In this document: one piece after another, positions 14,421 to 61,100 of the stretch
Position numbering within the stretch: the stretch's first letter is position 1
Layout: every line of letters begins with the position of its first letter
Source of the DNA: Octopus bimaculoides
Lineage: Eukaryota
Reading direction: 5' to 3'
DNA: 64,000 bases
Assembly: GCF_001194135.2 (NCBI RefSeq)
Contig: NC_068989.1
Span: 48,355,607 to 48,419,606, forward strand
Notes under the pieces: generated by a model
Databases searched by the model: none
Told to the model about the DNA's origin: nothing
What the model saw: the letters and a program-made list of their open reading frames with translations, nothing else
Position numbers and translations under genes: made by a program

Positions 14421-14449
14421 TTAACACTGAAATGGGGGATCTGCTCCAT

Positions 14450-15870: not shown

Positions 15871-15873
15871 TTT

Positions 15874-16220
15874 TCATTTCCCACGCACGACAGCGTTATA
15901 TGATTTAAGGATTATATGCGATTCCCTTACACACAATGTAAACCTATCTGAACTATTACCATATGGGGGATCCCTCACAATTATGGACCATGTCAGGTTG
16001 TAAGGCAAGTTACAATCCCTAAGTTTATTTATATATGCTGTTAAGGTAGTGGAATTCTTATAATTAGGGTTTGAAAAGGAATTCAGATGGACCCTATATC
16101 GTCTTTTGCAGTCTATCATACTACCTATACATATATATCTTGTTTTGTCTATTGGGTACACTAACTATACATTTATACACAACATTGTATCAAAGACATA
16201 ATCCAGCAAGTAGACAGGTT
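15874..16220 (-). mobile_element. Penelope-like element GIY-YIG endonuclease fragment
   Basis: YICIGSMIDCKRRYRVHLNSFSNPNYKNSTTLTAYINKLR..LTWSII...LCVRESHII fits the Penelope GIY-YIG pattern. Confidence 0.7.
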
Positions 16221-17065
16221 TTGGGGGCTCTACAGTTACAAATTTTATTCAGTTGCGTCCTACTATTAATGTTCTTATTTATATTTCCAGCATTATTAAT
16301 ATCATCAGATTGGAGTATGGTACCTGGTTTTAAATTCATTAAAGTTTGATTATTATTATACATGTCACTTTTATCTCATATCTTAGTTGTATTAGGAATT
16401 TTTAGATGATTTAGGCAGTCTGCCATTTTGAAGATTGACGTTTTTATTCCTATATCTATCAACCTCTCATTCGTTTTCTGCCTCCTATATTTATCACGCA
16501 TAACTTTTTACATGGAATCCTTATTTATATGTAATTTTATATGTATTTTTATATGCTTTTATATTTCTCTTATATTTTTATGTATGTTTGGTTTTATTCT
16601 TTATATCTTTGGAGAATTTTTATGCCTGGACATGCATGCTTTATATTGATGTATATAAATATATAAGATTCAATTACATTGATCGAATATCTTCATTTAT
16701 GTTCATGTCTTCATTTATTTTCATTTACGTGTTCGGGAATTTGGTTGATTGCGTAGGATTTGTGTTTTCATTTTCCTCTACTTTGTATAAATACACACAC
16801 ACACACACACATATTCACATGCGCGCACACACGCGCACACACGCGCACACGCACACACACACACATATGTAGGTCAAATACTATAATGTTACACTTGTCC
16901 TTCAGCTGATAGTGAAAATGACATTGCCACTTTGAATTACTTGAAATTCAACACTGCATTTCCTATCAACCTCACTATCAGAGAATGAAAAAACAAGCCC
17001 AAATCTTAAGCTGATCCCTTCTCACAATAATTGAACTTTTCTAGAATTTCCATATAGAAACAAAA

Positions 17066-26500: not shown

Positions 26501-27808
26501 CTGAACCTTAATGTTTTATAATGAAGATATTATTTAGCTTATTCAGCATCTGTGCTGGTGGCATGACATCGAGGCAATGACAAATGACCAAGACCTTTGG
26601 CAATATGCTGTGCTTGAGAAAACCCATTAACCCTTTCATTACCGTATTTATTTTGAGATGCTCTGTGTTTCTTTCAATTAATTTTAAATATAACAAAGAA
26701 TTTAGTAAAATAACTTAGTTACCATTAAGCTAGTGTTAGGAACATAAATCATGACTAAAGTTTGGTGAAAGATTTTAATTCAGAACTTATGAAAGCAAAA
26801 CATTTGTACTTCAGGGCCAGAGGTGGTTTCAGCCAGGTTAGTATTGAAAGCGTTAAGTGAAGTGAAATCATAGTCATGACAGATACTGGTGTCATGCAAC
26901 TGGCACGTAAAAGCACCCATTACATTCTTGGAGTAGTTGGTGTTAGGAAGGGCATCCAGCCATAGAAACCATGCCAAATCAGCCGTGCTCAAACTTTCCA
27001 ACCCATGCCAGCATGGACAACATATATTAAATGATGATGATGATGTTTGTATTGTAACAGTACTTGAAGAGGAAACAAGCCAACTAATGGTTATATTTTT
27101 ATGTCTACTTTATTTTAGATCTAAAAACCTACTGCTTCAATGGAGAGAACTTATCTAATATCCTCGTTGCTGAATGGAATCATAAAGATCCTTCAAAAGG
27201 TAAGATTTTTGTTCAGTGTTGCCTTCTTGTCTCTNNNNNNNNNNNNNNNNNNNNNNNNNNNNNNNNNNNNNNNNNNNNNNNNNNNNNNNNNNNNNNNNNN
27301 NNNNNNNNNNNNNNNNNNNNNNNNNNNNNNNNNNNNNNNNNNNNNNNNNNNNNNNNNNNNNNNNNNNNNNNNNNNNNNNNNNNNNNNNNNNNNNNNNNNN
27401 NNNNNNNNNNNNNNNNNNNNNNNNNNNNNNNNNNNNNNNNNNNNNNNNNNNNNNNNNNNNNNNNNNNNNNNNNNNNNNNNNNNNNNNNNNNNNNNNNNNN
27501 NNNNNNNNNNNNNNNNNNNNNNNNNNNNNNNNNNNNNNNNNNNNNNNNNNNNNNNNNNNNNNNNNNNNNNNNNNNNNNNNNNNNNNNNNNNNNNNNNNNN
27601 NNNNNNNNNNNNNNNNNNNNNNNNNNNNNNNNNNNNNNNNNNNNNNNNNNNNNNNNNNNNNNNNNNNNNNNNNNNNNNNNNNNNNNNNNNNNNNNNNNNN
27701 NNNNNNNNNNNNNNNNNNNNNNNNNNNNNNNNNNNNNNNNNNNNNNNNNNNNNNNNNNNNNNNNNNNNNNNNNNNNNNNNNNNNNNNNNNNNNNNNNNNN
27801 NNNNNNNN

Positions 27809-27850
<42 letters not shown>

Positions 27851-37146: not shown

Positions 37147-40100
37147 CTATTTCCATATTCTCTTGATGACATCTGGAGATGGATCTCGTCCACGGAACAT
37201 TCTGAAAATTTTGTTGGCTGATATTGAGCCACCCAATGCAAGAAATGTGTCGCGAAATCTGGAAACAAGACAAAAAGCAAGAACAAAGTTATTGGGCCAG
37301 TAATTAGGTCAGTAAAATTTTTTAAAAAAACACTTAGGAGGATTAAATAGGTAAATAAAAAGAAATGTGAGTAATAATCACAATGAGAGCATATTAAGAA
37401 TAAATGTTTTTCTTCTGAAATGATTGAAAAAGAAATATTTGATCCATATTATATAAAGTTTTTTTTACAATTTCTGATATTCAAAATATTTGAAGAAAGA
37501 TTTTCTTAAATTAAAAATTATCAATCATAGTAAAAAAAAAAAATAATAGGATAAAACATATTCTGGACTGCAGTCAATGCTACTTCTACAGTTTATCACA
37601 TAAATAAATGTGTTTGGTAAAATGTAAATGCTTCTTTCCCAAATACATAAGTACAGCACTCTCTGCCATCTGAACGAACAGGACATTCTATCATGACAGA
37701 AATCTTTAAGGAATTATTCATTAATTATTATTAAGTGAAAAAGGGTACTTGGAAGCTTTTGTGTTCAGTCCATGTCTGCCTACCCACTTGAATTCTAAAC
37801 CCGATAATTAAAGTATCTAATTATGAACAAAAATCAAATAGTAATATAAATATTTAAGAGAGTTTAGATGTCAGTAAATTCAGTTGATGGAAGGAGCTTC
37901 ATATTATAAAATTTCCAACAATTTTAATGTTCAAACACTTACCTCCAACGAGAGTGGAATGGTTATCTGGTGTTTTACAACATAAAATTGTAAGAGGGGA
38001 AGAAATCTACAGTCCAGGGAAACAATTGAAGATTTGCATCAATAAGAAACAGTAAAGAGGAAGAAGGCAGCGAGCTGAGAGAAACGTTAGCACGCCGGGC
38101 GAAATGCTTAGCAGTATTTCGTCTGCCGTTACGTTCTGAGTTCAAATTCCGCCAAGGTCGACTTTGCCTTTCATCCTTTCGGGGTCGATAAAATTAAGTA
38201 CCAGTTACGCACTGGGGTCGATGTAATCGACTTAACTCCTTTGTTTGTCCCCTCTATGTTTAGTCCCCTGTGGGCAATAAAGAAAGAACAGTTAAGAGGA
38301 AGAAGACCCCCCCCCCCTCCTTAAAGTATCAGGATTTGTCTCCTATCTCAACAAACATTTTATGAATTTTGAAAATTGCACTGTAAGCCTATAATCACTA
38401 TAAATGATATTCAATTACTGGAGCCTCCAGTACTCAGCTCTCAACTCATGGGTTACAGTTTAATTGTAAGAGATAATCTTTCACAGTTACTTACCGTCTT
38501 CCAATGGCTGATACAAGCTCTGTCTGTTCCAGACCAACTTCTTCAAAAGCAGCAAAGATGTCAGCTGCTATCATCTGAAAGGAGAGATTTAAATTTAGCT
38601 TCTGTTGGTGTTAAGAAGGGAATCTAGCCATAGAAACCATGCCAAAAGTAGACATTGATGCATGACACAGTACTCCAACTAGTCAGACCATGTCAAACCT
38701 TCCAACACATGCCATCCTGAGAAAGTGGATGTTGCATTATGATGAAAGTGTGAAAATTGAAGCAAAAAATCTTGAAAAGATTCAAGTAAGTTACTCTTGG
38801 AATTGACCCAGCTGTTAACAATGTAACTCTTATTATTAGGGAATGCTATTACCAAATTTTGCACCAAAATGAAATAGCTGAGATGTTTAGATATCAAACA
38901 ACTGAATAAAAGAGTCATGAGTTCAGATCTCAGTCTAGGCATTCCACTGCAACGTCACAGTTATATATTGCCTCAACTTCTTTAGCTGAATAATGTGTAC
39001 CAGGATAAAATTTTTCTATCCCTGAGTAGATTTATTTTTTTCATATAAATTAGCCAAATGATGGGGAGGAGTAATGTCTTTGACCATTGCATGCTGCTCT
39101 CCCACACTGGTGAGATTGATGTAGCTTGATATTTGGACTGAACATCTGTAGGCAAAATGTCCTCTGCAAAATAGGGACAGCAGCAGCCCGTCGGAGAAAT
39201 GAACCCTGCGAGGTGGAGTGGCTACTGCAGTGAGTGTCACTGGCCATTCTCCACAGCAACGCCATTGCAGTCATTACTGTGGGGTGCAGCTGAGCACCCC
39301 ACTTGTTCTAGGACATGTGGCCCATCACCCCCGAATCCATTTTCTTTAATTTTTTATTTTTTATTTTCTTTCTGTTCCATCTTTTTAAATCAAGATTTGA
39401 AATAAAGTTAATGTAATGTCAAAAAATAAAAAATTAGGTTGCAACTTACTTCAGACCACTTATGAGAGTAATAAGCTGCTGGATGTTGATCAGAGAAAAT
39501 ATGGGTGAAAGAGCAAGGATGGGCATCATCGTCACTGAGAGGTAGTAACATGTATTCATCCCAGATGCGATTCATTATATCATGCCAGTGTTCTTTGCTG
39601 GAATTTCATGAAAAAATAATAGAGAAAAAAAGGATTGATATGAGATGAAAATGAATACCACTCGCATAATATATAACTTAAAGTTTTAATGATATTGGAG
39701 TTATGGAGATGGCAGGAAGCCTGTTTCAAACTACATTTGATGTTCAAATTTTGCTGATGTTTGGTTTAGTCTTTCATTTCTCTAGTGAAATAAGTACCAG
39801 TAATATACTGGTTTTCATTCGACTGACTACTTACTCTTCACTCCTACAAAATGCATAACCCTTGTCTTTATATAAGAAATTGCTTTTTGATACATTTGTT
39901 CTAATTACTGTTTTTCTAGGTATCAATTACTGTAACTACTGTACTTCTGGGACACTTTAACCTCCAAAACACATCCCAATTTTAACTTGTGGATTTTGAA
40001 AAAGGATGAACATAAAAACAAGATCTCAGCAAGTTCCCAAACTTCCTATTTCCTATCTCAGGGTTGAACAGCATTTCTCAAGAAGCAGGCCACATGAGAC

Positions 40101-43100
40101 AAGGCTTACTCCTAAAAGAATTTAAGGTATTTTTTTGTTAGGCATGCTATTCACCATTATTATTGCCATGCCCAAAACCATCATTGCAAAGACCACTATA
40201 TGATTAAAGACATGAAGAGAAGGAGTAAATTGAAGCTAAGCTATTTTACATCAACTGCACACAATTTCATGTCTGTGTGTTTATGTAAGTAAATATTGTC
40301 TTGAGCCCGAGGACCATAAGGCCAGTTACATGTTTTCCATCTTGTACAAGTGACTGTGCCCCCTGAATTAGGTAAGTCTGTTGCAGAGTTTACAGCTAAG
40401 TGAACTGGAGCAAGACGAATTGTTTAGCTCAAGAATATAATGCACCATTCAATCTGGGAAGCAAAACCACAAGTACAACATGCTAACCATTAGGTCATAC
40501 ACCTTCATGTATCTGTGAAAGAAATGAATATTAAAATGAAGGATTTGTAGGGAACTGGTCAGTTTGCCGATATCATTAGCACTGTCAATTCGCCAATATC
40601 ATTGGTACCATGACTTTACTGATATCATTAGCCCCATCACTTGGCTGATATCATTGGCACTGAGTTTGCCAATATCATTAGCACCATTATTTTGTTGATA
40701 TCATTGGCACCACATAAGCAGAGAAACAGAGTACTTACCTGATATATAATTCCATGTCTAATGCACTAAGGTAGAGCTGTCGCATCATATCAAATCCAAT
40801 CATGTGTTTCTGACCTGACAATAACAAATTTTATAAAAAGCCATATCAGAAATAGAATCAAATTAAATAATTAATATTAGTTTCAAATTTTGGCACAAGG
40901 CAAGGATATCAGAGAAGGAACTAAGTCAATTACATTGACCACCGTGTTCAACTGGTACTTATTTTATAGACCCCAAAAGGATGAAATGCAAAGTCAACCT
41001 TAGCAGAATTTAAGCTCAGAAAATAAAGAGGGGTGAAAATTTGCTAAGCACTTTGCCCAGTGAACTAATGATTCTGCCAGCTCACTGCCTTAATTAGATA
41101 ATATAATTAATACTGATAATTAAATGGACAAACTGCTAGAAAATATATAACTTAATCTGAACCAAAATGGGGATGTTGACCTGCTAGAAATAACATTCAA
41201 ACTTCCTTGAAATTAGATCCATCTTGGTAAAAGAGGAGTACAATGGTCAATGCAAAGCAAGATAGACAAAAAAGCAGGAGGGCCTTGGGTGGAATGCCTT
41301 CTATCATAGATTTATTAGACTAGGAATGACCTGGGGCTAAACAACAGCAACCACAATATAATTGTATAATTCATTGAACTTTATCATTACAAAGAATGCT
41401 GGATGACAGACTCAGTAGAGTGGCAGACTTGCTCATTTTGATTACATTCTGAATTCAAATCTTGCCCATGTCAGGTTTGACTTCCATGAATTGATGGTTA
41501 ATAAAGCAAGTACCAGTCATGTGCTGGGATTGATATACACAACCATACATCTCCTGGCACCTTGACAAAGGGCCAAGACACCTGATGCCTTGCTATATTC
41601 AAGAAAACCTGTTCTTCACGTCAGAATTGATACTAATGGTGATGTCATGTAAAAAGCACTGGTGCTGGTGTTACATAAAAAGCACTCAGTACACTCTAAA
41701 ATGGTTGGCATTTGGAAGGGCATCTAGCCATAAGAACCATGCCAGAACAGATAATGGAGCCTGGTGCAGCCTCTGACCTTGCCAGGTCCTGTCAAACCGC
41801 CCAACCCATGCCAACATGGAAAACAATTAAATGAAATGATGATACACTGCTTCAAATAAAAAAAAATAAAAAATACTGCAGTCTATTGTATCATTAATCA
41901 TTGATATCAGTAGGAAAAATGAATGTGCAGCTCTATTGATCATATAGTTATGAATTCAAATTTTATGACAATTATTGTGTTGTATTCATGGGCATGGTAC
42001 ATAAGTGTATAACTGTAGTGTGCTCCAGTTTACTTAACTGACAAAATCAGGTTGTGCTTGTACTTCATTGTTGAGTGGTTAACAATAAGAATAACAACCA
42101 CCTGAAGAAAACCCAGACAGCTTCTGCTCAAATTTATAATGTGAGAAAAGCAAGTTAAAATTAGTCCACCATGCAAATATGGAAAAATGACTAAATACAG
42201 ACAGGCAGAGGCATAAACATATGATTAAGGAGTTTGCTTTACAACCTCATGGTTTTCAGTTTAACCCTCAAATGTCTTCTACTGAAGCCCCAGGCCAACT
42301 AAAGCTTTGTGAGTATGTTTGGTTAGGGAAATTGAAAGAAGCACAATATGTATGAGAAAATTAATAGTTGAATATTTTCATCTTAAAGCCCATCACGCCT
42401 TTATACATGCAAATACACACAGCCCCCACTACTCTCACACAAAAACCAAAGATATAAATAAAGAAAACCTTTAAGAAGTGTGTCCACCATTTCATCAGGC
42501 ATAGGTTCGCCTGTCTGATAGTGAGATGTTAAACTTTTCAGGGTACGTGCATCAGATAACCACATAGTCATGAAACTGGAGCAGACGTGGAGTGCATCCC
42601 ATTCCACATTTCTTTGACCTGCTATCTCACTGTATGGAACTGTAGTTAACATTTGTTGTAGACCGTGACCAAACTGGAATAAAACAGAATGAATTTATCA
42701 AGGAAATATGACAAATATCATTATCATTATTAACGGTTTCATTTCTAAGAACAAGATAATTTTTTTTAAAACTCAGATCCCATCTAGAGCAGTGGTTCAC
42801 AACCACTTTATTACTATTTTATTCTGGTGGACCCCTATAGCCATTTCTGTTTAAAAACTAGTTTCATAGATACTTCTTTCAAAATTCATATTTTGTTGAT
42901 CACACAATTACTTATGTAGGTTGTATTATGTAAAATGTCAGACAAAGAAACATAGCTGCTTCTTGCAATGAATACATCTAAAGCAAAATTTTTTCATGGA
43001 CTCATAAATTACAACTGTGGACCCAATTTACTATTTTTCTTGTGTGGACCACTCTTTCCCCACAAATCTTATATGGACCACAAGGGGGTCATATGGCCTT

Positions 43101-46100
43101 TGGTTGAGAACCACTGTCCTAGAGGGACAGACACTAAGCAGATATGTCCTTATCTATCACACAAAAACAGTGGTTGCAGTCATAAGGTAAAACAAAATGG
43201 AGGCAAAGCATACATCTGATTGATAATTTAGTTAAATAATGGTTACTCACACCACACATATAAGTAAGTAAATGGATCTCTGTTGGTTTTGACAGTGAGG
43301 ATTCAGTCACTCAAATGAATTATCCACTCATCGAATTAATGAGTGGCTGAGTATTCCACAGACATTCATATCCTTAACGTAATCCTTAGGCAGAATCAGC
43401 ATGATGCAGTGTGTGACAAAAAAAGTACTTCTGGATTATAGGTACAATACATTTGATGGGTTTCCACACAGTTTCTGTCAACCCAATTTCACTCAAGATT
43501 TGGTTTGACCCGAGGCAAATGATTTTGTGGGACCACGTGGTTGCAAAGTGAACTTCTTAGCTACGCTGTATCCACACTAAAACACACACACTTGAATGAA
43601 GGGTCAATGCTGAATATAACAAACCAATCAATGATGGCATGTAAAAAGCACACAGCACACTCTGTAAAGTGGTTGGCATTAGGAAGGGCACCCAGCCGTA
43701 GAAACCAGGCCAAATCAGACAGGAACCTGGTGCAGGTCTCCTGCTTGTCAGCTCTGGTCAAACCGTCTAAGCCATGCCAACATGGGTTAGATGAATCAAT
43801 CTCTTGACAGCACCTGCAAGTGAACTGAGTAATGAACTGATATTAGAATAAAGGGCTGGGTTAAAGATAAACTGTCAATACCTCTGAGAACAACATATGG
43901 ACTTCCTGAAGTGTCATAAGAGTTGGTATACTGGGCACAAGTGGTTTGTGAAGGTTTAGCACCAAATAAGAAAATGGTTTCAGGTCATGTAAATCACTTC
44001 GCTCTGAAAAATTAAAGATAAACTAATTAATTTATTGATTAAATTTAATGTCTAGAGGAATTATTATAACTTAAAACAGGTTTGCACAACACATATATTA
44101 CAACATGCAGACTGCAACACATGAAGCATAATAATACATGGGCCACGACACATTGAGCATTAATAACATTCAAGATATTGTGATTGACAGAGTGTATTTG
44201 TCTCATTGCATATCTCTGGACAACTTCTAAACTGATTCCTATACTGGACGAAATGGGGTTCCAGACTGGAGATATAAACTGAATGTGGATGTACCACAGC
44301 CATAGATAAGTGGCAAGCAGCTAACTACCGTTTTACTGAGTGATACTGAAACATCTTTAGCCCTTTTGACAATTTTAAGAATGTGATGAGCCCAGTGCAG
44401 ATCATTGTTGATAACAATAACTAGGTCACATTTACTAGTAGACTTCTTAAGGTTCGTATTGAGGAAGGGTTAAAAAAAAAAGGTATCCACTGAGAACATT
44501 AATTTTTTTTTTTTTATCATCTCGGTTCCATGGTAAGAAGTTTGCTTCTCAACCGCATAGTACTGGGTTCAGTCCCAAGGTGTAGCACCTTGGGCAAGTG
44601 TCTTTTACTATAGCCTCAAGCCAACCAAAGCCTTGTGAGTGGATTTGGTAGACAGAAACTGAAAGAAGTCCATCGTGTGTCTATATGTCTGTGTTTGCCC
44701 CCACCACCAACAGACAACCGGTGCTGGTGTTTACTTCCTCACAATTTAGCAGTTCAGCAAGAGAGACCAATAGAATAAGCACCAGGCTTTAAAAAAAAGA
44801 GAAAAAGTTCTGGGGTTCATCAGTTCAACTAAAATTCTTCAAGGTAGTGCCCCAGCATGGCCACAGTCTAATGACTGAAACAAGTAAAAGATAAATTTAT
44901 TAAAGAATATAATTTAGAAACAATAACAATGTAATGAATCTCACCTCGACCAATTTCCATCCATGTTCCACTCATTTTACCTTGATGTGCATAGGGATCG
45001 AAAAAGAAAGATGCCCTATATTCACCTGAAAAAAATAAATAATTTGAAAAGGAAGTAGTTTCAATATAACATTTCTGATGGGTATAATTAACCCTTTAGC
45101 ATTCAGATTATTCTGTTAAACGGAATGCTTATTTATTCACATTATTTGGAGTTAATCATGCCTTGTTTTGTAGCTTCAAGATTTTGATGAGGTAACTGAA
45201 TTTTTTGAATGACATTGTAGGGTTAGTGTCAGAGGCCAAATCTGGCCAGTTTGAACATAAAACAGGTAGAATGTTTTAGCTGAATATAGCTGGTTTAAAT
45301 GCTAGAGTTAAATGTATGATTACTACTGGTGAATTTATAGCTCCACATAGAATTTTACCAATCAGTCTGCTTCCAGTAAACTAGTGTGGTTACTTCTATA
45401 TTTAGTAATATTGGTTTAAAATTTTGGCACAAGGACAGCAGTTTCAGGAAGGGGTTAAGTTGATTACATCAACTTCAGTACTTCACTGGTACTTATTTTA
45501 TTGATTCCGCCCAAAAGGCAAAGTGTACCTTGATGGAATTTGAAGATGATATATGCTGCTAAGTGGCTTGTTTGGTGCAGTGATAATCTTTTGTTTCAAA
45601 TTTTGGCACAAGGCCAGCAAGTTCGGGGGAGGGTGTAAATCGATTATATTGACACCAGTGTTCAAGTATTACTTATTTTATCAACCCTAAAATGATGAAC
45701 AGCAAAGTTAACCCCAGCAAAATTTGAACTCTGAAGGTAAAACGGACGAAATGCCATTAAGCATTTTTCCCGGCACTAACAATACTGCCAACAAGTTCAA
45801 GGGAGGGTGTAAATCGATTATATCAACCCTAGTGTTCAAGCAGTACTTATTTTATCAACCCCTAAAGGATGAAAGGCAAAGTCGACCTAGGTGGAATTTG
45901 AACTCTGGGCATAAAACGGACGAAATGCCACTAAGCATTTTGTCCAGTGCGGTAACAATTCTGCCAGCAAGTTAGGGGGAAAATGTAAATCGATTATATC
46001 TACCCCAGTGTTCAACTGCTAATAATTTTATCAATCCCAAACGAATGAAAGACAAAGTCATCCTCGGACATAAAAACAAATGAAATGCTGTAGAGCAATT

Positions 46101-49100
46101 TGCCTAGTATGCTAACAGTTCTGCCAGCTTGGTGTTTTACTGTATTCAGTAATATTACTGGTTATGGTATATAGAGTATATATAGGATAAAGATGATAAA
46201 CACAAGATGAAGTTTATACCATTTGTTCCTTACGTGTTTCATTCACCATTGTGGCTATTTGCATCTTATGCAGTGGATGCTCATAGCACATTCAGATGCA
46301 GATCCACAACGACTTTTCGGGGGGCTACTATTACATTATGTTTCAATAAAAAGGTTATTTTTATTTACTCATAATGTCACTTTGTTTTTTGAAGGATGAA
46401 ATGTAAATAGATATAGTTTCCAATATCTTACTGATAAATACTTGCTCAGAAAGGAATTGAATTCAGAATATCAAGACACAACTAATCCAGATATAAAGTG
46501 TTCAATATGGCTCAATACAATATTTATTAAATTCAATACATTCAGATGCACAGTTTCCTACTTTCCCTATATGTGTTTATATATATATATGTTTACAAAT
46601 CTATCTAACTATTTGGAGGAAATCAACTGTTGAAAAAAGAAAAAAAAACTTGTGGTAGAGAGGGGAGAGCACTCTGACATCAATTTTTATGCAGTGGCTG
46701 GTAATTGGTGATATCTTAAAAAATACACACTAAAATAATAAACCATAAGAGATTAAAAAAATTCTTACCTTTTTCATCATAAACACCAAACAGTTTCACA
46801 TCTGGCAGTGAATTGTCATTTTGATCAGATTCATCCTGTTGTACAGAATAAAAAATCTTTTTAAAGTAAAAAAAAAAAATCCACCTACCAATTTTGTTTC
46901 CTCATAACTTTCAGAAAAATAGATATATCTAATGAAATTTTCAATGAATATCTTTCAGACCTCTTAAGAGTTGAAATAAATAATCAATCAAGTATAGGAG
47001 TCAACATAATCTGTTAAATCCCCTCCCCTCAAAGTGACAAATTATTATGATGTACTTGAGATAACTGTTCACAAACCTTGATTATAATTCCAAAAAGTTT
47101 TTCACAAAACTTGAAGAGAGAATTCAAAACATGAGACAACGGGAAATATTGAGCTATCTGGCTTTCATTGATGCTAGATAAACAAAGAAATAAAAAATGG
47201 TAAAGACATATTTTAGGAAATTTATAGAAATCATCATCATCATCATCATTTTAATGTCTACTATTCCACCATGCTTGCATGAGTTAGAGGAAACTCGGTG
47301 AGACAGATTTTCAACTGCCCTATGCTGCTCCTAACACCAACTTCTCCTGTTTCCAAATAAGGAAACACTTGCCCCTAGTCTTTTGAATGTAAACAGTACA
47401 TTAGCCACACATTTACTTGGAAGATTGCAAACAATTGAAGCTGCTTACAATTAGCATGTAATATCAAGATAAGGAGACATAAACATACTCATGCACAAAC
47501 GCAGACACACACATACAACAGGCTTCTTTCATTTTCTGTCAACTATATCCACTCACAAAGCTTAACTATAGAACCATATGTGAACCTACATCCACACAAC
47601 CATGATGTCTGCATTAATGTACAAATATACTTCAATGTAGTGAGACATAGGCAGTTAAATGTAGAAGGGCTAGAGAGAAATGGTGCAAATAAAGCCTTTT
47701 GGAAATATAACATCAATTTGCATGGAAAGTAGGCCATAGATAAGAGAACATTTTATGTATGCAGGAGAGGAATTTGTACTGCTATGGACATATGATGTAC
47801 ATGAACAAGGAGTGCTAGGTTTTTAAATCAATCATCTGAACACCTAGTTAACATTTAAAATAAACCAAAGAGGGATTTCTAGAGTATAGTAGTAGTGTGG
47901 AGGAAAGATAGGCAAAAAGAACTTAGTGTGGATTGGGAAGTGAAACTTAAGGTATTTTGTTGAGTTTGAACCAAGATTCTTCATTCTACATGTCTCATGT
48001 TACCTAACTATGAAAAATAAATTATTTGCAGCCACAAAGAAAACAGAGAAAGTGTATTTGTAATTCTACTCACCCATAATACTGGTTTTTGTGTATCCTT
48101 CTCCAGTAAGGAACATCCCAACACTGTAACTCATGGGGAAAGCCTTCAGAAACAGCAAAATCCTGCAACTCTTCTAATTCTTCTTTAGCAATAGGTTTAA
48201 AATGATTTTTATATCTAAACAAACAAACAAATAATAATAATAATAATAAAAACTGTAAAGGTTGTGCCTATGTTAATTGGTGCATTGGGACCAATAAGTA
48301 AAGATATAGACAAATGGTTGAAGGAGACTGGAATAGAATGTACTGTAGAGCTTCTACAGAAAGTTTGCCTCTTAGGGACAGGAAAGATTATCAGGAGGGT
48401 TCTAAACACTAGAAAGACTAGTGAAAGCTTATGGATACCTAGGATTACAGGTAGTAACTTGCTCCCCACATAGATCCTACAAGGAATAAGACCAAAGCTG
48501 AGTCAATAATAATAATAATAATAAAAGCAAGAAGACGATATATGATCCTAGAGGAGCAAAATAAACAAACAGTGTAAGGTCATAGATTTTGCAATTCCCT
48601 ATGATAGTAGACTCAATACCAAAGAAATTGTAAAAATTGAGAAACATTAGGATCCAGCCAGGGAGCTGAGGAGACCAAGACAATAATTATTCCTGTAGTA
48701 ATTGGTGCACTTGGCACAACACCTAAAATGCTTCCTAAAAGACTGAAAAAAGTGGAATTTAAACTTGCATTGTTGTCTTGCAGAAAAGTATCATCTTATA
48801 TTCTGCAAGAATCTTAAGGAAAGTTCTTAAGATTTGAGAAAACTTGTTGTCACTGAACCTCAAGATAAAATCCCTGTTAATCAAATTAGCATGTACCAGC
48901 TTACTACTACTACTAATAATAATAATAGTAGTAAAAATAATAATAATAATAATCCTTTCAACTATAGGATCTTAGGGGTGGGAGCTAGTTGATTGCATCG
49001 ACCCTTGAACTTGATTGGCACTCATTTAATTGACCTCCTTGAAAGGATGTAAAGCAAGATCAACCTTGGCAGCATTTGAACACAGAATGTAAAAATGGAC

Positions 49101-52100
49101 AAAACGCTGCTAAGCATTTTGCCAGCTCACCACTTAAGTTCCGTTGATGGTGGCTTCAATACCAGTAGAGTTTATCTAGAACAGGTAATGTCCCACTGTA
49201 GATTGTCCATAATCCCCAACCTAGTATTCCAGACAAGACTACTAAGACTGTCATCAATGATGCCCAAATTGCTCCCAAGCCATTGCCGTGCATACCTTCC
49301 ATTAACTGACTTTTCACTGATTGTTTGGTCCAGTTGATAGTGTGCAGTACATGCTTGCCTCATGGTCCATTTGGTAAAGTATATCATTCTAGATGCCCAA
49401 ACATGATCTGCACTTAACCAAGGACAGTATCTCAAAAAGAAGAGCTGTAGAAAAGTATACTACACAAATGGCAGATATGTCAGCCTCAGTGTCGGACTAC
49501 ATATCATCAACCCCAGCAATTCTTCCCCCAAAATATGTGGCTGTATAACTAAAAAATTCACATACTTATACAGGTTGTTCAAGCTAAATTTGACAATTTT
49601 TACGTCTTTTTTTTTTCAGAAACAGCTTGATGTATTGGTGAACAATGAAAGACAGTGAAGTATAAAGATTAAAACTGTAATTGAGAAAAAGTTAACTGAC
49701 ATTGAGAACTGGAAGCTTTCTAAATATTGGAAAAGATTACCTGTGTCATGATGATTTGCACCAGCCATCAAAATGCCAACATCATGAATGTTACACAAGG
49801 CTCGTGAACACTGTAAAGGCTGTAAGATGTGACATGAACAGCTGCAATGATGACTATGAAGCTATAGCCAGCAGGAACAAACACACCAGGCATTTGACTA
49901 CATCTGCACACTGGAATCCATCCCCACATCTTTGAACAACGTCTTAAGCTCAATTCAGACAGTTACATGAAGCTGCTGGAGACTGTTGTCAAACTCTGAC
50001 TGGAGATGGTTGCTGTTGGAAGGCAACAGGATTTGGCTCCTTGCATACTTCCACAGAAGTAGTTGTTGAAGATTTTCTATGACCTCTCCAGCCCCAATTT
50101 CTGGCCTCCTAATTCCCAATTACTATGTGTGGGGTGCAGTTGAGAAAAACACCAACCAGTTTGCCAGCAACATCAAGGCCAAGCTGGTGGGCCAAGATGA
50201 AGGAGGAATACATGTGCGAAGTTCCAGACCCTTCTTGAGACCATGGTAGAAGCTACTTGATATTTTTTTGATTTCTTAAAATACTTTTATTTTTAGCTGG
50301 AATATTGTGTTTTGTTTTCCTTTTCCATTTACATCCCTATAACTTGGTCATTTGGCAAAATGAGACCAAAACAATAAGTACCAAACTTGAAAATATGTAC
50401 AGAATAAATTATGGCAAATAAACTCTTCAAAACTGATACCCCAGCACGTCCACAGTGCAATGATTGAAACAAGTAAGCGAATAAAGGAATAAAGAAAATA
50501 GGTATATGTATGGAACTTACGTTTCTAACATGGTGAGCACATTCTCTACAGATCCTGCCATTTTGGTCTCCATAGACATATGAGCAAAACTGTTATACCC
50601 TAAAATGTCAGCAATGTCCTGTCTGCAAGAAATAGAAAAAAAAACCGGTTCTTAATAAATAAAACTGGAGAAATAAGTTTTATATAATAAGTTCCAAAAA
50701 TTAAACAGAAATACAACAAAGATACAAATGGAAAATTCACAACCAAAAAAGGACACTGCCATTTCCTTGACAGTTATCATCCCAAAAATCCTTACAATTT
50801 CAATGGTCATGCCAACAGAGAGAAGCTGTTGGGAATGGCAAACGAATGTTTAGGACAGTGACGGAAACAAACACAAAACAAATATTTATATACATATAGT
50901 TAGTAGTTAATAAACTGTATGGTAGTAAAGCACATTCACAGCAGCATCCTACCTGTGAGGGATCGATACTAGATGAGTCCAAACGATTATAGCGATCAAT
51001 AAAGATTCTCGTATATTACATCTTCCATCCCTCTCATTAATTATATATATCCGCCTTTTTAAGTCCCACTCCCTGACCCCGATTGTTCCTGTTAATATAA
51101 TTCTAAAATATTGGAGAGTCTGAGAAGATTATTGCTGAGATTTATCCAGAGTGATTTTCATAAGAGCTAACCAGTCATACTGTCTCTTAAGACAGCAAAA
51201 CATTCCCTCAATACACACAAGAGAGAAAAAAGCCAGGTCAGTTCCTCCTCATTTTTGCGATTATCAAAGAATATCTATATGTATTTTTCCATACATGTAT
51301 TTTCATACTTACACTGTTTCAAACATTTTCATCTTGTTATCAGAGATGTGTAATAATCAGTATGTAACACTACAAAGTTCATACAAAGCTTTATACTTTA
51401 AATATATTCCTCTTATTATCATCAAAGAATGTATATATGCATTTTAATATTCAAACTGTTTTTTAACATTTTTTATTATTCTCAAAGACTTTTGATAATC
51501 TTTTTCTAAAAAAGTGAAACCAGTTANNNNNNNNNNNNNNNNNNNNNNNNNNNNNNNNNNNNNNNNNNNNNNNNNNNNNNNNNNNNNNNNNNNNNNNNNN
51601 NNNNNNNNNNNNNNNNNNNNNNNNNNNNNNNNNNNNNNNNNNNNNNNNNNNNNNNNNNNNNNNNNNNNNNNNNNNNNNNNNNNNNNNNNNNNNNNNNNNN
51701 NNNNNNNNNNNNNNNNNNNNNNNNNNNNNNNNNNNNNNNNNNNNNNNNNNNNNNNNNNNNNNNNNNNNNNNNNNATATATATATATATATATATATATAT
51801 ATACTGAACAGTATTAAATCCAATTTTTTAGGTTAGTTTTGCAAATTTAGATATTTGCCATTACTTTATCAACTACCATCATTATTATTTCCATGTCTAT
51901 TTTCCAATGCTGCACAAGGTGGGACAGGCCCCTCTCAATCCTCTTAGACCTATGTCCGCTAGTCTTTGAGACCCAATATCCTGAAAACTGACATTCCACA
52001 CTGATCATGTAAGAATGATATAGTTAATTTAATCCATTAGCATTCAGATTATTCTGTCAAATGCAATACATATTTATTCATATTGTTTTGAATTTAATCA

Positions 52101-55100
52101 TGCATTATCTTGTAGCTTTAAAATTTTGAAGATGTGATTGTTTATTTTTAAAATGACACTAGGGTAGATGTGAAAGGCTAGATCAGGCTGGTATATTCAT
52201 AAAACTGATAGAATATGGATGAGGGTTGATGACAGAATTCAGCCTAATTTCTGTCTGACCTATACAATCATAGAAAAATGTCCATTAAGATAAGATGGTG
52301 GTGGTGGAGGTGTATTTTCATGTGTAAAAAAACATTTTAAAAATTACTAAATTCTAAAGGTCTGGGAATAGTGGCAATTTGCTGTACTTGAGAAGACACA
52401 TCAAGCCAAGTAAGATTGCTGCCATACATACAGGCTTATCCTTTACAGGTGCTGATGCCACATAAAATGCACTCTTGGTGGTGGCACATAAAAAGCACCC
52501 AGCACACTCTGTAAAGTGGTTGGCATTAGGAAGGGCATCTAGCTGTAGAAACCATGCCACGAGAGATAATTGGAGTTTGGATAGTTCTCCAGCTGGTCAG
52601 CTCCTGTCAAACCATCCAACCTATACCAGCATGGAAAACAGACATATGATGATAGTGATAATGGTGATGATGATAGAAGCTCTTAAGTAAAATATTTTGA
52701 CATCCTTGTGTTTTGAAGTGTAACAAAGAGAGTAAACAAATTTCACAATTTTTAAGTTGGATGAAAATTAGTACATTTCAAAATTCTAAGATTCATTAAT
52801 GAAAAAATGTTATGCATTCAATCTTGACCTCCAAGTCTTCTCTGGGTCTATCTTACCTCTGACTGAAAGCCATTACAAATTTACAATATTTTTTTACCAT
52901 TCAATGATCACTTTTCATTCTCATCTCAAACATATTGCAACGACTGAAAAAAAAAAAATCTCATAATAAATATATATATTTATATATATTACCGAAGAAG
53001 CCTTATTTCATGAATAATTTTGTGGTTCGCAAGATCTCGTTCCTGATGCTTTGGTCCTGCACGGCTATTGTATGCTTGCCATACATTCCAACGAAGTGTC
53101 CGGTTGTGGCAGTGCTCCAGGAATGCTTGGTATACCTGACTCTGAAGTGTGACTTGCCATGGTCCAACTTTGGGTTGTTGTCTGGTAATTGAAATACAGT
53201 TTCATGTTAAACATAAAATTATTACAAGGACACTTAATGGTTTCTTTAGACCAAACAGCAGTCCAACAATTTTTGAGAAAGAAATATAGTTTACAGTCAG
53301 ATGGTTTGGTACTGTAATATATTACTGAAACAGTTTTGGTATTTAATTTAGGCCTATGGACTGAAGAAAAACTAAATCAGTTTCAATGGAAATTTGAACT
53401 TAGAACATAGAGGAATTAGACTAAATATTGTAAGGCTTTTAGTCTGGGGATGTACATTTTCTGAAAACATGTCAGCCTTTCTAAAAAATATTCCCATAAT
53501 TGTGTCTGTTCTAAAAAATTATTTGTAACGTCGTATGTAAACAAACAAGTTTGTTTTTCGAAGCGCTGAAATGTATGGTAGAACAAGTAGAAAGATAAAT
53601 TTTATTCAACACAGATACTAAACAGTATAGATATAAAGGATAAAATTCTTTTCTTCTTTTTAAAAGCAGAAAAATTTGTCAGCAGCCAGCCATGAGGATC
53701 GAACTCACCGATCCTCATGGCTGGCTGCCGACAAATTTTTCTGCTTTTAAAAAGAAAAAAAGATTTTATTTTTTATATCTATACTGTTCAGTATCTAATT
53801 ATTTGTAAGTTAAAGAACGATAAAGTCACTAGAACACCTGATTCTCCAACTGGAGGAACCTCCTCTTGACTTTGCTCAGTAACATTTATTTGGTGTTGGA
53901 ATTTCATTTTGAGGATTTGCTTTAGTCACTCCACTAGTCCTAAGGGTTGATCAGGGTGTTTGTAGACATCTCATCAAAATGTAGATAGCCAAAACAAACA
54001 CCACAAAGTACCTAGTCTGACAATCAGACAGTTCTGCCAATACACTACTCTGGATTGATAACTATTTTTTATCACTCTCAAAAGGATGAAAGGCAAGGTT
54101 GACTGTAGCAGGATTTGAATGAAAAAGTTCATGAAATTAACTAGAGTTAAAGTGATGCGATAAGCTTTATGTAAAATTGAAAGAAAAAGAATATTTAAAA
54201 CATGGAAAAATGTGTGTAGACATGGACATGCAGTTAAGAAGTTCATTTCCATACACAACAGTTCTAGGTTTGATCCCCTGGACCAGTGTCTGCCATCATA
54301 GCCTCAGATAACCAATGCCTTGTGAGAAAAATTTGTTAGAAAGAAATTATGCTGTAGCATGTGTATACACACACACACACACACACATATATATCACATT
54401 AAGTTCTCTACATAGTTCATGGTCTGCTGTATTCTTACCAAGCAACACTAAAACTATTTGATGAAGGCCTAATCAATCAGACTCAAGCTGTAATTAGTAA
54501 AAGTCAAATACATATTAGAAGAGGTCAAGTATATATTATTAGTTTCAAATCAATATTGAACATCTTAACAGTATTAGTTCAGATCATATTATATATATTA
54601 GAAGTATTTGGCAAGAAATCATTGTATTTAGCTGTTGTTGCTTAGCATCAAGCCAGCTTTGATTACACAGATCTATGGCAGGTAATCAAACAGCTAACCC
54701 TAAGCAATAATTCTGTTATTCTAAATAAACCATACTACCATCTAGTAGAGAACCATACTCTGACATGCAGTGATTTGCTGTTTGGCAGTACAGACATGTT
54801 ATATTTTACCCCACAACACACCAGTCTGTTTTAATATGTTCACACAGTCTATGGTGGTGGCCACAGTGGCAGAGAGTGATGTAGACTTGGTCAGAATTCT
54901 CTGTCTTTATCAGTAATAAAATACACCACAAGGCAATACCTAAAATATTAACTAGAGGTCATTCATTACATTCCAGCTATACTTACATCAGATAATTTTG
55001 CACATATCAGCTATACAAACTTGAGCTCATATTATACATTTTCACTACCTTAGATAGAGGTTATATTGTACATTTTGGCTTTGATAACTAGAAGTCATAT

Positions 55101-58100
55101 TGTACATCATCATCATCATTTAACGTCTGTCTTCCATACTAGCATGGCTTAGATGGTTTGACAGGAGCTGGCCAGCTGAAGGCCTGCCTGGATTCCATGT
55201 CAGTTTTAACATGGGTTTCTATGGCTGGATGCCCATCTCAATGTCAACCACTTTACAGAGTGTAATGGATGCTTTTACGTGGCACAAGCACAGGTATTTT
55301 TATGTAGTACTGGCATGGGTGCTTCTTACATGGCACTGGCACCATACATCTATGTAGTGTTGGAACCTTTACATTTTCATTATACTAAACAAAAGTCACA
55401 CTGCTCATTTTGGTTATATTTACAGGGTGGACTTAGAGCATTTTCTCATGCTAGCAGCATATATGTACACCCACACAATGAGCATCTGCATTGTTTCTGT
55501 GAGTTTCACTTACAAGATATTAGTACAAGACACACAATGTACTACTGGCAGTGAGATTGAATGCAGTACCACGTGGTTTCAAAGTGAACTTCTTCACCAC
55601 ATAATAGTTGCTTGCACCTGTGGAAAGGTGATGTCTAGTTTTGAAAGAATGTGTGTATAGCTGTAGAATTTACAAAATTAGCCAAAAGTTTCCAAAACAA
55701 AGAAATTCAACTTACTTGTCAGCAGCCATCATGGATATTATAGCAGGAGACATGTTTTTGACAAAAGAGTAATCAGTGACCCATTGAGAAAACATATTCT
55801 GACACACCATCACTTTGCTCCTGAACAAATTGAAAAAGAAATATATCTTATATAATAATACCTTAATAAATGATTTTTTTTTTTTTAAATTTGCTTTTTT
55901 AAGTAAAGATGGTAAGCATTACCCATGAATTTTTACAAGGCCCCTGAGACAGGTGAGAGAGAGTAAGGTATCTTTACACTGGAGACTTGGTATGAGTTTG
56001 TTTTTTTTTCTTTTTCTACAATAGGCATAAGGCTGGAAATTTGGGGGGTGGGGGCAGAGACTAGTTGATTATATTGAACCCCCACGCCCCACTCACTGCT
56101 CAAAATTGACACTTTATTTTATTGACTTTGAAAGGATGAAAGGCAAAGAACCCTGGTAGAACTTGAACTCAGAACATAAAGCCAGAAGAAAAGCTGCTAA
56201 GCATTTTATCCGGCTGGTTAATAACTCTCCCAGCATAAATTCTTGCAACAGAATGGACTCCACTAAAGGCACCCAAGATGCCAGGTATTGTTATTAAACA
56301 AGGCAATGGATTGAAGTCTACCACTCAAGTGAGCCATGGTGAAATTTGAACTAAGAAAGCAAAATTTCAGAGGAAATACAGCAAGGTATCTGATCCAAAG
56401 TTTTTTAAGTTCAACCAATCCATCACTCTTGGTACACTTTTTAACAACCCCAAAATAATGAAAAGCAAATATGATTTGGGCGGGATTTGAACTCAGAATG
56501 CAGAGAGAAAGAACAAAACCTTTGAGATATTGTATCTGATGCTAAGATAGTCTATTCAATTGATTATTTTAATGCATATAAGACTCTTCTCTATTTATGT
56601 TCTCTGGCTTAAAATTTATTGTGTCACACTAAAATTCTATTGTTTCTTTCTTAGCTCTGTGACCATATCATTCATTTAAAGTAGTTTTTCTCAACCATTT
56701 TTCAACTATGGACCCTTTGATTCCTATTTTACTTGGATAGACTCTCTTAGCTATTCAATGTTAAAAAAATCCTATTATATTTTTATAATTAAATATTATT
56801 ACAAATTGTATAATAATAATTATCAAAATATTTTGTGTATTGTAGAAGTACAACTAATTTAGTGTAGATAAATTTTAACAAAATCTTTTATGGACTTCAA
56901 AGGTCATATGGACCTCAATTATGAACCACCACTTTAAAGTAAACAAGTTATAAGTGTTGAGTATTATACTAAGATAAATTTGAATACCATATATAATGTA
57001 AATACAAGCAAACTTTTTAAGTTATCATCCTTCATATAATAATGAAATTTTAAAGGACATTTGTTTTAATTTGAACATAGAAAATTAAACAAGAGTGGTT
57101 TCATGTATGTTAATAACATAGAAATATAGATTTTGGGTTGATATCAAAAGAATTAAAGAGAAATGAAAGCTTTGCAAGCAACATTCTCAAGGATCAGCTA
57201 TATGCCACTAACTAGTGGTTTCATTTACCATTAATTCCTACAAAGAAGGCCAAATATACTTAAAAATATGTAATTTCTTGTTTGTACACATTTAGAATAG
57301 AGGCAAAGACATCTTCAGACATCTCACTGAATTTAACTTCATTAGTATTATGATAGTTGAAGGTTAAAAAATACAGTTGAAGGATATCATCATCATTTAA
57401 CATCAGGTTTTCATGCTTGTACAGGCTGGACAGTTTGGCAGGAACTGATAAGATAGTGGATTGTAGACTAACCACCATGGTAGAGAAGGAATAGATTAGG
57501 GATAGGATGATTGAGAAAAGTGGGAGGATAGTGTGTGTGGAAAGGTGATAGAGTGGATAGTGTAGAGGGGTCTAGGGCTATCCTATATTATAAGAAGAAG
57601 TATATAAAGATGTGAGGGAAAGGGGACATGTAGGGAACAATAAACTAGGATAGAGGAATCATTAGACTCAGCAAAGGTGAGAGAGGTGTAGGGGCCATGG
57701 AGTTAGGTCTTGGGAGAAAAATAAGAAGGGGCATTAAGGAGGTACAGAAGCTGTCGGGAGAGGATAGGAGGCAGAGACAGAACAAAGAAACTTGTTTGGC
57801 AACTGTGAGTAGTATATCTTACCTAAATGTATTCCTTTCACGTGTTAGTTTGCGTAAGATATCAATAAACTTTTTCCTGCTGGACCCACTGATCTCAATG
57901 CCATTTAAGTGGCCTTCTAATAGATAAAGATTAAGTAACTGCTGCTGGTAGCAATCCAATTTAGAACGGTCTGCATTCACTTCCTGAAAACAAGAGAAGA
58001 AAATTATAAATAAATACATAAATACTTTAACCCTTTTGCATTTAAGCCAGCCATATCCGGCCAAAATATTTTATTTGTTTTATGTTCAAACTGGTCAAAA

Positions 58101-61100
58101 ACACTCTCTTACGCCTACCCTACAATGTCAAACAAAAAGTAAATAATCCCATAATCAAAATCACAAAGCTACAAGATAATATATGATTAATTCAAAACAA
58201 GGTGAATAAATAAGCATTATGTTTGGCAAACTAATCTGAATGCTAAAGGATTAAAGGAGATGAATGAATAGTTGTGTGATTTAGAAATTCCCTTTTTTTC
58301 GTTTTTATTTTTTACACTTGCAGTGCCCATAACCTTTACAGGAGCTCTGAAACTGGTGAACTTACTCATATCAATGCTCTGCTTAAACAGTTGCAAATCA
58401 ACACCCTCTAAAGGAAAGACACAAGTAGGGAGCAGATTCCAGAGGGTCAAAGTTCTGGGGAGAAAGGACTGGATATAATTGTTAGTAAGGGTCCTGAAGA
58501 CAGTGGGTGTTGGACACAACTGCATGGTTCCCACAATGTGGAACCCTGAGAATGTCTTCTAGCACAAGCTTGGGTCGCCCAAGCCTTGTGAGTAAAATTG
58601 GGTGGATGAAAACTGTGTGGAAGCTTCTTTTATGGTTCAGGTGTGGGCGCATATATTAGTTATTGAGTAATATTGTTTTATTTTTAACATTGTATATTTA
58701 AAGCTTATAATGTAGTGGTGTACAGACATAAGATTATAGTGATGTATAGCTGTGAGAGTACAGTAATATACAGTTCCATGAAGAAAATAATTTAGTGTCT
58801 CAAGAGTTATTGTGATTTCACCCAGAGAAGTGATACCAATGTGCTATGTAAATGAGAGAGAGAGGGAGAGAGAGATACTAAGTAACACAAAGAAGGCATA
58901 GAAAAAATGAGGTCTTCATAGATTGAAGCCCTTGAATAAATAGTATGGTAAAATCTTCATAGCTGAGTGGTTAGGATTAAATTAACAAGAGAAACTATCT
59001 GAGCAATGTAGTTAAAGGTTTGTATAAGAGCTGAAATTAATAGGAAAATATTAGCAAGAGTATAAACAGCCTGAGTGTAGCTATCAAAAGATCTATTCAA
59101 CTCTGCTTGTTTAGGGGACACACATACTGTCTTTAATATTTGGAGAAGTGTAGAAACAAATAAATATTTAGTGGTTGTGTAACAACTTACCTTTACTGCA
59201 TTATACAATGGTTCACTTATCCACCTCTCATTCTTAGCTTGATCCACTTGTGAATGAATCTAAAAGGTAAAAGATAGAATTTAAATAGTTATACAACAGC
59301 TGATAATTTAACAGCTGTACAGCCAATGGTATAGTTAAGAAGATTCTCAACCATATGATTTCAGGTACAGTCCCACTGTGAAGTATCTTAAGCGAATGCC
59401 TGCTACTATAGCTTAAGATCAACCAAAGCCTTGAAAGTAAAGTTGACCTCAGGATTTACACTCACAGCATAAAGAAACAGAAATAAATACTGCAAAGGAT
59501 AATAATAAAAATAAGAATAATGGTTATTATTATTCCATAACTGAAGATGGTGGATTAGTAGAGTTGTCAGACAAAATGCCCTGCAGTTCTTTACTTTCTG
59601 GGTTCAAATCCTGCCAACTTCAACTTTGCCTTTCATCCTTTCAGCTCAGTAAAATAAGAAAAGTTAAAGACTAGATTTGATGGGTCAGAAACTGAAAGAA
59701 GCCCATTGTATGTATATATGTGTGTGTGTTTTGTGTCTTTGCCTTGATATCACAAGACACTTGTAAATGAGTGTCACCATCTTACAAGCAGTATCCATTT
59801 TTAATCTACAAAAACATGTCAGGCCATAAAGAAATACCACCTTGCTTGGAAACAGGTGAAGGTTGGCAAAAAGAAGGGTTTCTGGCTGAAGAAAATCTGC
59901 CTCAATGCAAGCATGGAAAATTAGTAATTTAAACAATGATGATCATGATGACTACTGTTAACTCCATGGTAATGCCAAGGAAATAAACAAGTGTTACAAA
60001 AGCAAACCCCTCAGTTGAGAATCTGAATTTGTATTTAATATTTGTGTTCAATAAAAGTGATCAATTTTTGTTTTTATGCCCTGAGCTTTGACTGAGCAGA
60101 AGACCTATGGCCAAAAGCATTCCCATCATGATTATCTTATCTTTTAATTCAAACAGTGTATCTAGGACTCCATTACCTAATAAAAAATCAATAGGATGTT
60201 AATATTACTATTATCATTGTTAAAGCAGTAAGTTGGTAGAATTGTTTGCAAGCTAGGTGAAGTGTTTAGTGGCATTTCATCCATCTTCATGATCTGAGTT
60301 CAAATTCTGCTGAGATCAACTTTGCCTTTCATTCTTTCAGGGTCAATTAAAATAAGTACCAGTTGAGTACTGGGTTTGATGCAACTAACTTACCCACCCC
60401 TGCCGAAATTGCTGGCCTTGTGGCAAAATTTGAAATCAATATTATTATCATTATTATTTCGATAGCTGAGGAATAGAAAAAGTAAACATTTATGTTCAGA
60501 ATTCAAATCCCACAGGAGTTGAATTTGCTTTTCATATCCATACAGCAATAATATGATTAGAATTGATTCAATTGGTCTTACACCCATCCAGATTTGTAGT
60601 ATGTAACAATACAAAAAGGGCAGCACATTGGCAGAATTATTAGAGCATCAGACAAAATGCCTTGTGGTATTTAATGGTATATTTTTATGCACTGAGGTGA
60701 ATTTTGCCTTTCATCCTTCAAGGGTCAATAAAATAAGGCTGAGACAAATCTTTTACAAAATGCTGGACACTATAGTACCACCCACATATCTCAGAAAGAA
60801 CACCTAGTTAGAATATGTAGATATTCCAGAAGGAATACAAAAGAAAAACAACTATCTGTTTGATAACCAAGGAGAGAGTACAACCATTGTACAACCAGAT
60901 AGAAATAACAGCTAAATTTCCCTCACATCATATCCTCCCAATTAAAAAAAAAAAAGGAATGAGGTAACAAATGCTATAATCCTAAATACAACAATATACT
61001 TGAAAATAGACAGGATGGTCACATTTGGAATGCCATTGAACAAAGGTCTGTTTAATCATGCTTGACTTGGAGTTGACAATGAAAACAATACATTCATTTT

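Follow-up and report, generated by a model that had tools for sequence, protein, structure and literature searches.

We analysed a stretch of 64,000 nucleotides (nt) of AT-rich eukaryotic DNA from Octopus bimaculoides (RefSeq assembly GCF_001194135.2, contig NC_068989.1, positions 48,355,607 to 48,419,606), hereafter the window, whose minus strand carries a homologue of the M3A peptidase oligopeptidase A. We consider it likely that the window holds exons 2 to 18 of the gene that is orthologous, in cephalopods, to animal oligopeptidase A of the OpdA/PrlC/plant-OOP type in family M3A, and that this gene encodes a conserved, non-proteolytic peptide-binding protein that is probably mitochondrial. 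Judged from the aligned homologues, the protein is best read as one member of a protostome-wide lineage with mosaic loss of catalytic residues, rather than as the owner of a purpose-built His-rich site. An earlier sequence-only reading of the same DNA had offered both a pseudopeptidase and such a rewired site, and the first of these fits all of the evidence presented below.

The gene model was built with Escherichia coli PrlC and then with P0064, the best database match of the window protein, as exon guides. P0064 is an Argonauta hians protein annotated as 'probable cytosolic oligopeptidase A'. The model comprises 17 exons between positions 63517 and 37147 with 685 codons and no internal stop (Table 1), and all 16 introns have GT..AG borders and pyrimidine tracts. 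The Argonauta orthologue has 18 coding exons, of which exons 2 to 18 match the 17 window exons exactly in length. Its coding exon 1 measures 113 nt (approximately 38 residues), and no counterpart of the Argonauta N-terminus was found between the first window exon and the window end. Coding exon 1 of the octopus gene, which lies upstream of the window end (beyond position 64000), is thus the only one missing from the window. The gene had been called intact, with 17 exons in frame. The open frame and the canonical introns bear this out, except that the first coding exon is beyond the window and the start codon is not visible.

Four spliced exons (44003-43882, 42673-42469, 40814-40739 and 39597-39450, minus strand) read ...EVHMLFSE|FGHGLQQMLT...NVEWDALHVCSSFMT... 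and ...HIFSDQHPAAYYSHKWSE, as had been proposed from the letters alone. We numbered the catalytic sites by E. coli PrlC and aligned the window protein to PrlC and to Arabidopsis OOP (PDB 4KA8). In canonical M3 enzymes such as thimet oligopeptidase and Dcp, positions 473 and 499 bind zinc, whereas 607 and 614 lie on a loop that closes over the substrate. The window protein carries the motifs LFSEFGH, WDALHVC and HIFSDQHPAAYYSHKW. In the alignment with Arabidopsis OOP and TOP2, FSEFGH lies under FHEFGH, WDALHVCSSFMTMW under WDAVELPSQFMENW, and HIFSDQHPAAYYSHKW under HIFAGGYAAGYYSYKW. The first zinc ligand, H469, is replaced by Ser (TCA, 43885-43887), so that the motif reads SEFGH and the HEXXH with both zinc His is absent. 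The general-base Glu470 (GAG, 43882-43884) and the second zinc His473 (CAC, 42665-42667) are both retained, in agreement with the sequence-only reading. The zinc-ligand E499 is replaced by His (CAC, 42587-42589; WDALHVCSS versus the canonical WDAVELPSQ), and each of the two substrate-loop Tyr residues is also replaced by His, Y607 at 39483-39485 (CAT) and Y614 at 39462-39464 (CAT). Of the positions given for these codons earlier, those of Ser469, His499 and His614 stand, while the one for position 607 (39480-39482) is that of the adjacent Pro codon CCA. By this alignment, the protein has lost four of the six catalytic residues of an EC 3.4.24.70-type zinc peptidase: its first zinc His and its ligand Glu, together with the two transition-state Tyr. 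Pro501 is in addition replaced by Cys (42581-42583), as in nearly all protostome homologues. No exon that would restore HEFGH exists in the window, where no HExxH-like motif was found in six frames; xFHE strings occur on the plus strand only and are unrelated.

Despite these replacements, the window protein is recognisable as a member of the family over its whole length. The Pfam domain Peptidase_M3 (PF01432) matches residues 233-681 with 379.9 bits (cut-off 27) and the TOP_N domain (PF19310) matches with 46.7 bits; the 183-residue piece from the four exons alone matches Peptidase_M3 with an E-value of 1e-43. The best NCBIfam model is the oligopeptidase A equivalog NF008159 (residues 11-680), which the protein matches with 371.4 bits, far below the cut-off of 927. 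The fold was predicted with AlphaFold2 on the Argonauta orthologue P0064, which is 88% identical and has the same six-site pattern. The resulting model has a predicted local distance difference test score (pLDDT) of 90.9 and a predicted template modelling score (pTM) of 0.87, with disorder confined to residues 1-35. In a Foldseek search it matched 4KA8, 4PUT, 1S4B and 1I1I (Arabidopsis OOP/TOP2, thimet oligopeptidase and neurolysin) with template modelling (TM) scores of 0.82-0.87; with Dcp included, the range was 0.77-0.87. Together, the sequence domains and the predicted two-domain, mostly helical clamshell place the protein in subfamily M3A.

The closest solved structures, in sequence as well as in fold, are those of the Arabidopsis enzymes OOP/TOP1 (organellar) and TOP2 (cytosolic), with PDB entries 4KA7, 4KA8 and 4PUT. 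The fold matches show roughly 32% identity, and the 183-residue piece gives an E-value of 9e-35. The likeness extends to the architecture of TOP_N followed by Peptidase_M3 and to the organelle-type N-terminal leader found in orthologues of the window protein. Where OOP shows HEFGH, a ligand Glu within WDAVELPSQ and the two Tyr, the window protein has SEFGH and a His in place of the Glu and of each Tyr. E. coli oligopeptidase A (PrlC/OpdA, M03.004) is collinear with the window protein over the whole length, but differs at H469, E499, Y607 and Y614.

The gene is intact, live and under purifying selection. Compared with the exact rebuilt Argonauta coding sequence, the proportion of differing sites was 0.061 for nonsynonymous sites (pN) and 0.639, near saturation, for synonymous sites (pS). 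This corresponds to a ratio of nonsynonymous to synonymous substitution rates (omega) of about 0.04, or a crude pN/pS of 0.095. The 60 codons around the old zinc site, with a pN of 0.007, are the most constrained stretch of the protein. The exons of Octopus and Argonauta align, while the introns, repeats excepted, do not. P0065, a more distant orthologue from another cephalopod (76% identical), occurs in 17 RNA-derived Logan assemblies as an open reading frame of 2169 nt without interruption. These read LFSEFGH, so the Ser-encoding exon is part of the mature mRNA of a relative. The altered catalytic residues and the start codon outside the window might still suggest that the gene is decaying into a pseudogene, or that errors of assembly or sequencing are involved, but this explanation is effectively refuted by the absence of any stop or frameshift, the canonical introns, the low omega, the conserved exon structure with the missing exon 1 at the expected place in Argonauta, the identical residues in that independent assembly, and the Ser and both loop His in the RNA-derived contigs of P0065. 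The earlier contention that the gene is not decaying is well supported by these data.

To see how the six catalytic sites vary, we aligned 122 sequences with MAFFT, among them the 120 best homologues of the window protein and PrlC. The named protostomes in this set comprise molluscs, annelids, a nemertean, Priapulus, chelicerates, a myriapod, crustaceans and insects. The full set H469-E470-H473-E499-Y607-Y614 (HEHEYY) was found only in PrlC, Priapulus, five deuterostomes and the coral-like P0161. None of the 112 degenerate animal homologues, of which those named are all protostomes, has all six catalytic residues together, and Priapulus is the only named protostome with a complete set. Of the six, position 469 varies most, with 13 residues seen (Q, H, K, R, Y, N, S, F, A, G, L, E and T). 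Position 470 is Glu in lophotrochozoans and Lys or Arg in arthropods (80 of 121 sequences), and nearly all lophotrochozoans retain both Glu470 and His473. At position 499, most pancrustaceans have Glu and most lophotrochozoans have Gln; the other residues seen there are H, Y, P, R, D and N. The His of the window protein at this position is shared by octopods and scattered lineages (8 of 121), while two other cephalopod sequences, P0065 and P0003, have Tyr. Position 607 is Trp in pancrustaceans and His in cephalopods only (3 of 121). At position 614, His is the commonest state, old and widespread (75 of 121 animal homologues). Ser469, His607 and His614 are common to all three full-length cephalopod sequences.

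The diversity of patterns extends further. When the Priapulus protein was searched against 1.84 billion cluster representatives, approximately 40 further degenerate clusters at 50% identity emerged, with very diverse six-site patterns. Changes are likewise not limited to the six sites. Of the 238 columns whose residue is shared by at least 95% of the canonical proteins, 123 are unchanged in lophotrochozoans, 19 have switched and 96 vary, and the loosened columns are concentrated near positions 465-510 and 590-617, including the zinc-site surroundings P501, S502, Q503, E506 and N507 and the Tyr loop. Several derived residues, P501C, S226C, Y236W, W49F, Q90H and G610A, are common to all protostomes including Priapulus, which suggests that a functional shift began before catalysis was lost. 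The window protein shares the derived residues of the clade, for example Cys501, Ala610 and the PAAYYS motif.

In a neighbour-joining tree, all protostome sequences fall into a single clade, with a bootstrap value of 100%, on a long stem of 0.33 substitutions per site. The internal order of this clade comes near that of the species, and Argonauta is the sister of the window sequence. Cnidarian and deuterostome sequences have short branches and adjoin the cyanobacterial enzymes. The canonical OpdA-type proteins of echinoderms, hemichordates, amphioxus, cnidarians and Priapulus are orthologous and belong to the same single animal clade, with the same leader and length. They retain HEHEYY and share 55-68% identity among themselves and with cyanobacterial enzymes, whereas the protostome members other than Priapulus are on a long branch, have degenerate sites and are approximately 40-46% identical to the canonical proteins. 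As a separate observation, the canonical animal proteins P0100 and P0193-P0297 are 55-57% identical to cyanobacterial M3 peptidases and adjoin those in the tree, rather than E. coli PrlC. Two very long database proteins, P0298 (7248 residues) and P0335 (2119 residues), each contain three to four separate M3-like stretches and may represent tandem arrays fused by gene prediction.

A canonical HEXXH-bearing paralogue, suggested earlier as something to look for, was found in no protostome. A search with a canonical starfish OpdA returned echinoderms, hemichordates, amphioxus and cnidarians (58-81% identity), then cyanobacteria (55-57%), and not a single protostome. Three canonical fragments, P0002, P0013 and P0161, were considered as traces of a hidden protostome copy and rejected, as they are coral-like (81-88% identical to coral proteins). 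Protostomes thus appear to be without a canonical OpdA-type gene, and since the tree of the degenerate proteins also tracks the species tree, these would be the orthologues of the canonical ones. Priapulus, an ecdysozoan, keeps all six residues, and arthropods and lophotrochozoans have lost different ones. The simplest account would therefore be two independent inactivations, through E470K/R in arthropods and through E499Q or other residues in lophotrochozoans.

How might such a protein work? The clamshell would still close around short peptides in the old substrate channel, and the enclosed peptides would be bound but not cut. The basic N-terminal leader of the orthologues would make mitochondria the probable site of action. 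This leader, approximately 30 residues rich in Arg and Lys and poor in acidic residues, precedes the conserved YYVLLPE in canonical as well as degenerate animal orthologues, whereas a cyanobacterial homologue lacks it. In the Argonauta model the leader is disordered. The conserved fold and channel-lining helices, the persistence of Glu470 and His473 in lophotrochozoans and the strong constraint on the octopod pocket indicate that the pocket still matters, but the position of the first zinc ligand varies freely, which speaks against a peptidase that depends on metal. From these observations we infer the absence of peptidase activity, the binding of peptides and the mitochondrial location.

Several points weigh against this interpretation. 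With Glu470 and His473 kept in nearly all lophotrochozoans, and the pocket being the most constrained part of the protein in octopods, it is clear that the site retains some role, and residual or altered catalysis may be part of this. Some lophotrochozoan members, with the pattern HEHQYY, lack only the ligand Glu, so that zinc might still be bound, perhaps weakly. The mitochondrial location is deduced from leader composition only, and exon 1 of the octopus gene itself is outside the window. The protein database contains no proteins from the genus Octopus, and the missing cephalopod paralogue is judged from Argonauta, RNA-derived assemblies and other protostomes.

One alternative is that the protostome pocket was repurposed and not just disabled. 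Lineage-specific sets of conserved residues would then serve a new ligand-binding or catalytic role. Such sets could be S-E-H / H(Y) / H / H in cephalopods, perhaps as a His-rich metal centre of His473, His499, His607 and His614, and x-K/R-H / E / W / H in pancrustaceans. We regard this as unlikely.

The narrower proposal, that His473 and the new His499, His607 and His614 form a His-rich metal centre with different chemistry specifically in cephalopods, strikes us as quite improbable. By homology, all four His positions face the old catalytic pocket, three of the replacements (Ser469, His607 and His614) are shared by the full-length cephalopod sequences, and the octopod pocket is strongly constrained. 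However, position 499 is occupied by Tyr instead of His in the other cephalopod sequences P0065 and P0003, and His614 is no cephalopod novelty, as it also occurs in insects with otherwise quite different pockets. Across the clade, none of the other five positions varies as much as 469, and the residues around the canonical zinc site are changed or variable too. The three gained His residues had been singled out as the striking part of the gene. Mosaic degeneration in every named protostome homologue except Priapulus, with Y607H the only one of the three that is cephalopod-specific, speaks against this. Variability of the new His among orthologues had been named in advance as an outcome that would count against a rewired site but not against a pseudoenzyme, and this is what we found.

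It is similarly doubtful that the protein is still a peptidase, with weak or altered hydrolysis by Glu470 and His473 and with His499 as a substitute ligand in a metzincin-like arrangement. Retention of the general base and the second His in nearly all lophotrochozoans would be in keeping with this, and His can act as the third zinc ligand in other zincin clans. Yet the first zinc His is gone, with 13 different residues at its position among relatives, both transition-state Tyr are replaced, and arthropod orthologues carry Lys or Arg in place of the general base. The long stem branch and the loosening of about half of the canonical invariant positions also argue against continued hydrolysis.

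A conserved pseudopeptidase would not be without parallels. Metallopeptidase pseudoenzymes include the M16 core proteins of respiratory complex III, inactive relatives of ACE and neprilysin such as ACE3 and Drosophila Nepl15, and the non-catalytic ADAMs. Like the proteins described here, these keep a peptidase fold under selection after the loss of zinc-ligand or catalytic residues, but they differ in family and fold (M16, M2, M13 and M12). In the full-text literature, outside of subscription journals and MEROPS, we found no description of a functionally studied M3A pseudoenzyme or of inactive animal M3A/OpdA homologues. MEROPS may flag these proteins automatically as non-peptidase homologues.

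The label 'oligopeptidase A', which public annotations give to relatives in the form quoted above, implies an active enzyme, and the evidence here suggests otherwise. All sampled protostome orthologues except that of Priapulus, from molluscs, annelids, nemerteans and arthropods, have lost catalytic residues, yet strong purifying selection on the protein has persisted. This clade-wide pattern is more remarkable than the narrower claim made for the octopus gene alone. If the pseudopeptidase interpretation is true, these proteins represent an extensive and ancient lineage of M3A pseudoenzymes for which we found no description, and a natural system for the role of a peptide-enclosing clamshell that can no longer cut. 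Functional inference in invertebrate degradome and proteomics studies would be corrected accordingly. Possible roles include the sequestration of presequence peptides or the sensing of peptides in mitochondria. Plant OOP degrades presequence peptides in mitochondria (PMC9291397), and is given there as cleaving peptides of 8-23 residues (Kmiec et al. 2013, cited in PMC9291397).

Table 1. Coding exons of the oligopeptidase A homologue in the window, numbered after the 18 coding exons of the Argonauta orthologue.
Exon	Position	Strand	Length (nt)	Remarks
2	63354..63517	-	164	Length as in Argonauta exon 2; phase-1 acceptor; encodes LPEIPPDT...; first exon within the window
3	61271..61410	-	140	
4	59191..59259	-	69	
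5	57823..57983	-	161	
6	55716..55820	-	105	
7	52993..53181	-	189	Peptidase_M3 domain begins here
8	50521..50622	-	102	
9	48074..48214	-	141	
10	47077..47173	-	97	
11	46769..46835	-	67	
12	44945..45025	-	81	
13	43882..44003	-	122	3' end reads ...EVHMLFSE; carries Ser469 and Glu470
14	42469..42673	-	205	FGHGLQQMLT...WDALHVCSSFMTMW; carries His473, His499 and Cys501
15	40739..40814	-	76	
16	39450..39597	-	148	HIFSDQHPAAYYSHKWSE; carries His607 and His614
17	38495..38574	-	80	
18	37147..37258	-	112	Includes stop codon 37147-37149; terminal ...DVIKRIWK*

The introns of the M3 gene contain repeats of several kinds. Two are tandem repeats, at 40561-40712 (period 50/76, approximately two to three copies) and 45613-46060 (period 174, 2.6 copies). 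A short interspersed repeat with the core TGCCCTTCCTAATGCCAACCAC occurs five times in the window, where 0.01 copies would be expected by chance, at positions 17197 (+), 26933 (-), 41701 (-), 43669 (-) and 52516 (-). Three of these copies are within introns of the M3 gene, and related copies are found in Argonauta introns.

The M3 gene is convergent with genes for SSAT2-type GNAT proteins (diamine/thialysine N-acetyltransferase-like), which are also conserved beside the Argonauta orthologue. Two tandem copies are present on the plus strand, one at 28000-28170 and 29998-30123 and its paralogous pair at 3446-3616 and 6604-6699. PDB 2BEI is matched with an E-value of 2.7e-9, and in that alignment EYES--IC stands in place of the acetyl-CoA loop EYRGQGIG. 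This could reflect another degenerate enzyme homologue beside the M3 gene or, alternatively, an exon that was missed. Elsewhere in the window, a Mos1/mariner transposase remnant is located at 4559-4897 (-; Pfam HTH_48, E-value of 2e-18). Runs of N, which represent assembly gaps, at approximately 27230-27840 and 11200 are bordered by (TA)n/(TATA) simple repeats. A GC-rich block at approximately 14000-20000 (0.40-0.46 versus about 0.35 elsewhere) contains broken retroelement reverse-transcriptase open reading frames on the minus strand, such as 18701-18922 (RVT_1, E-value of 1e-7). An integrase-like open reading frame without a Pfam match is located at 14905-15201 (+).

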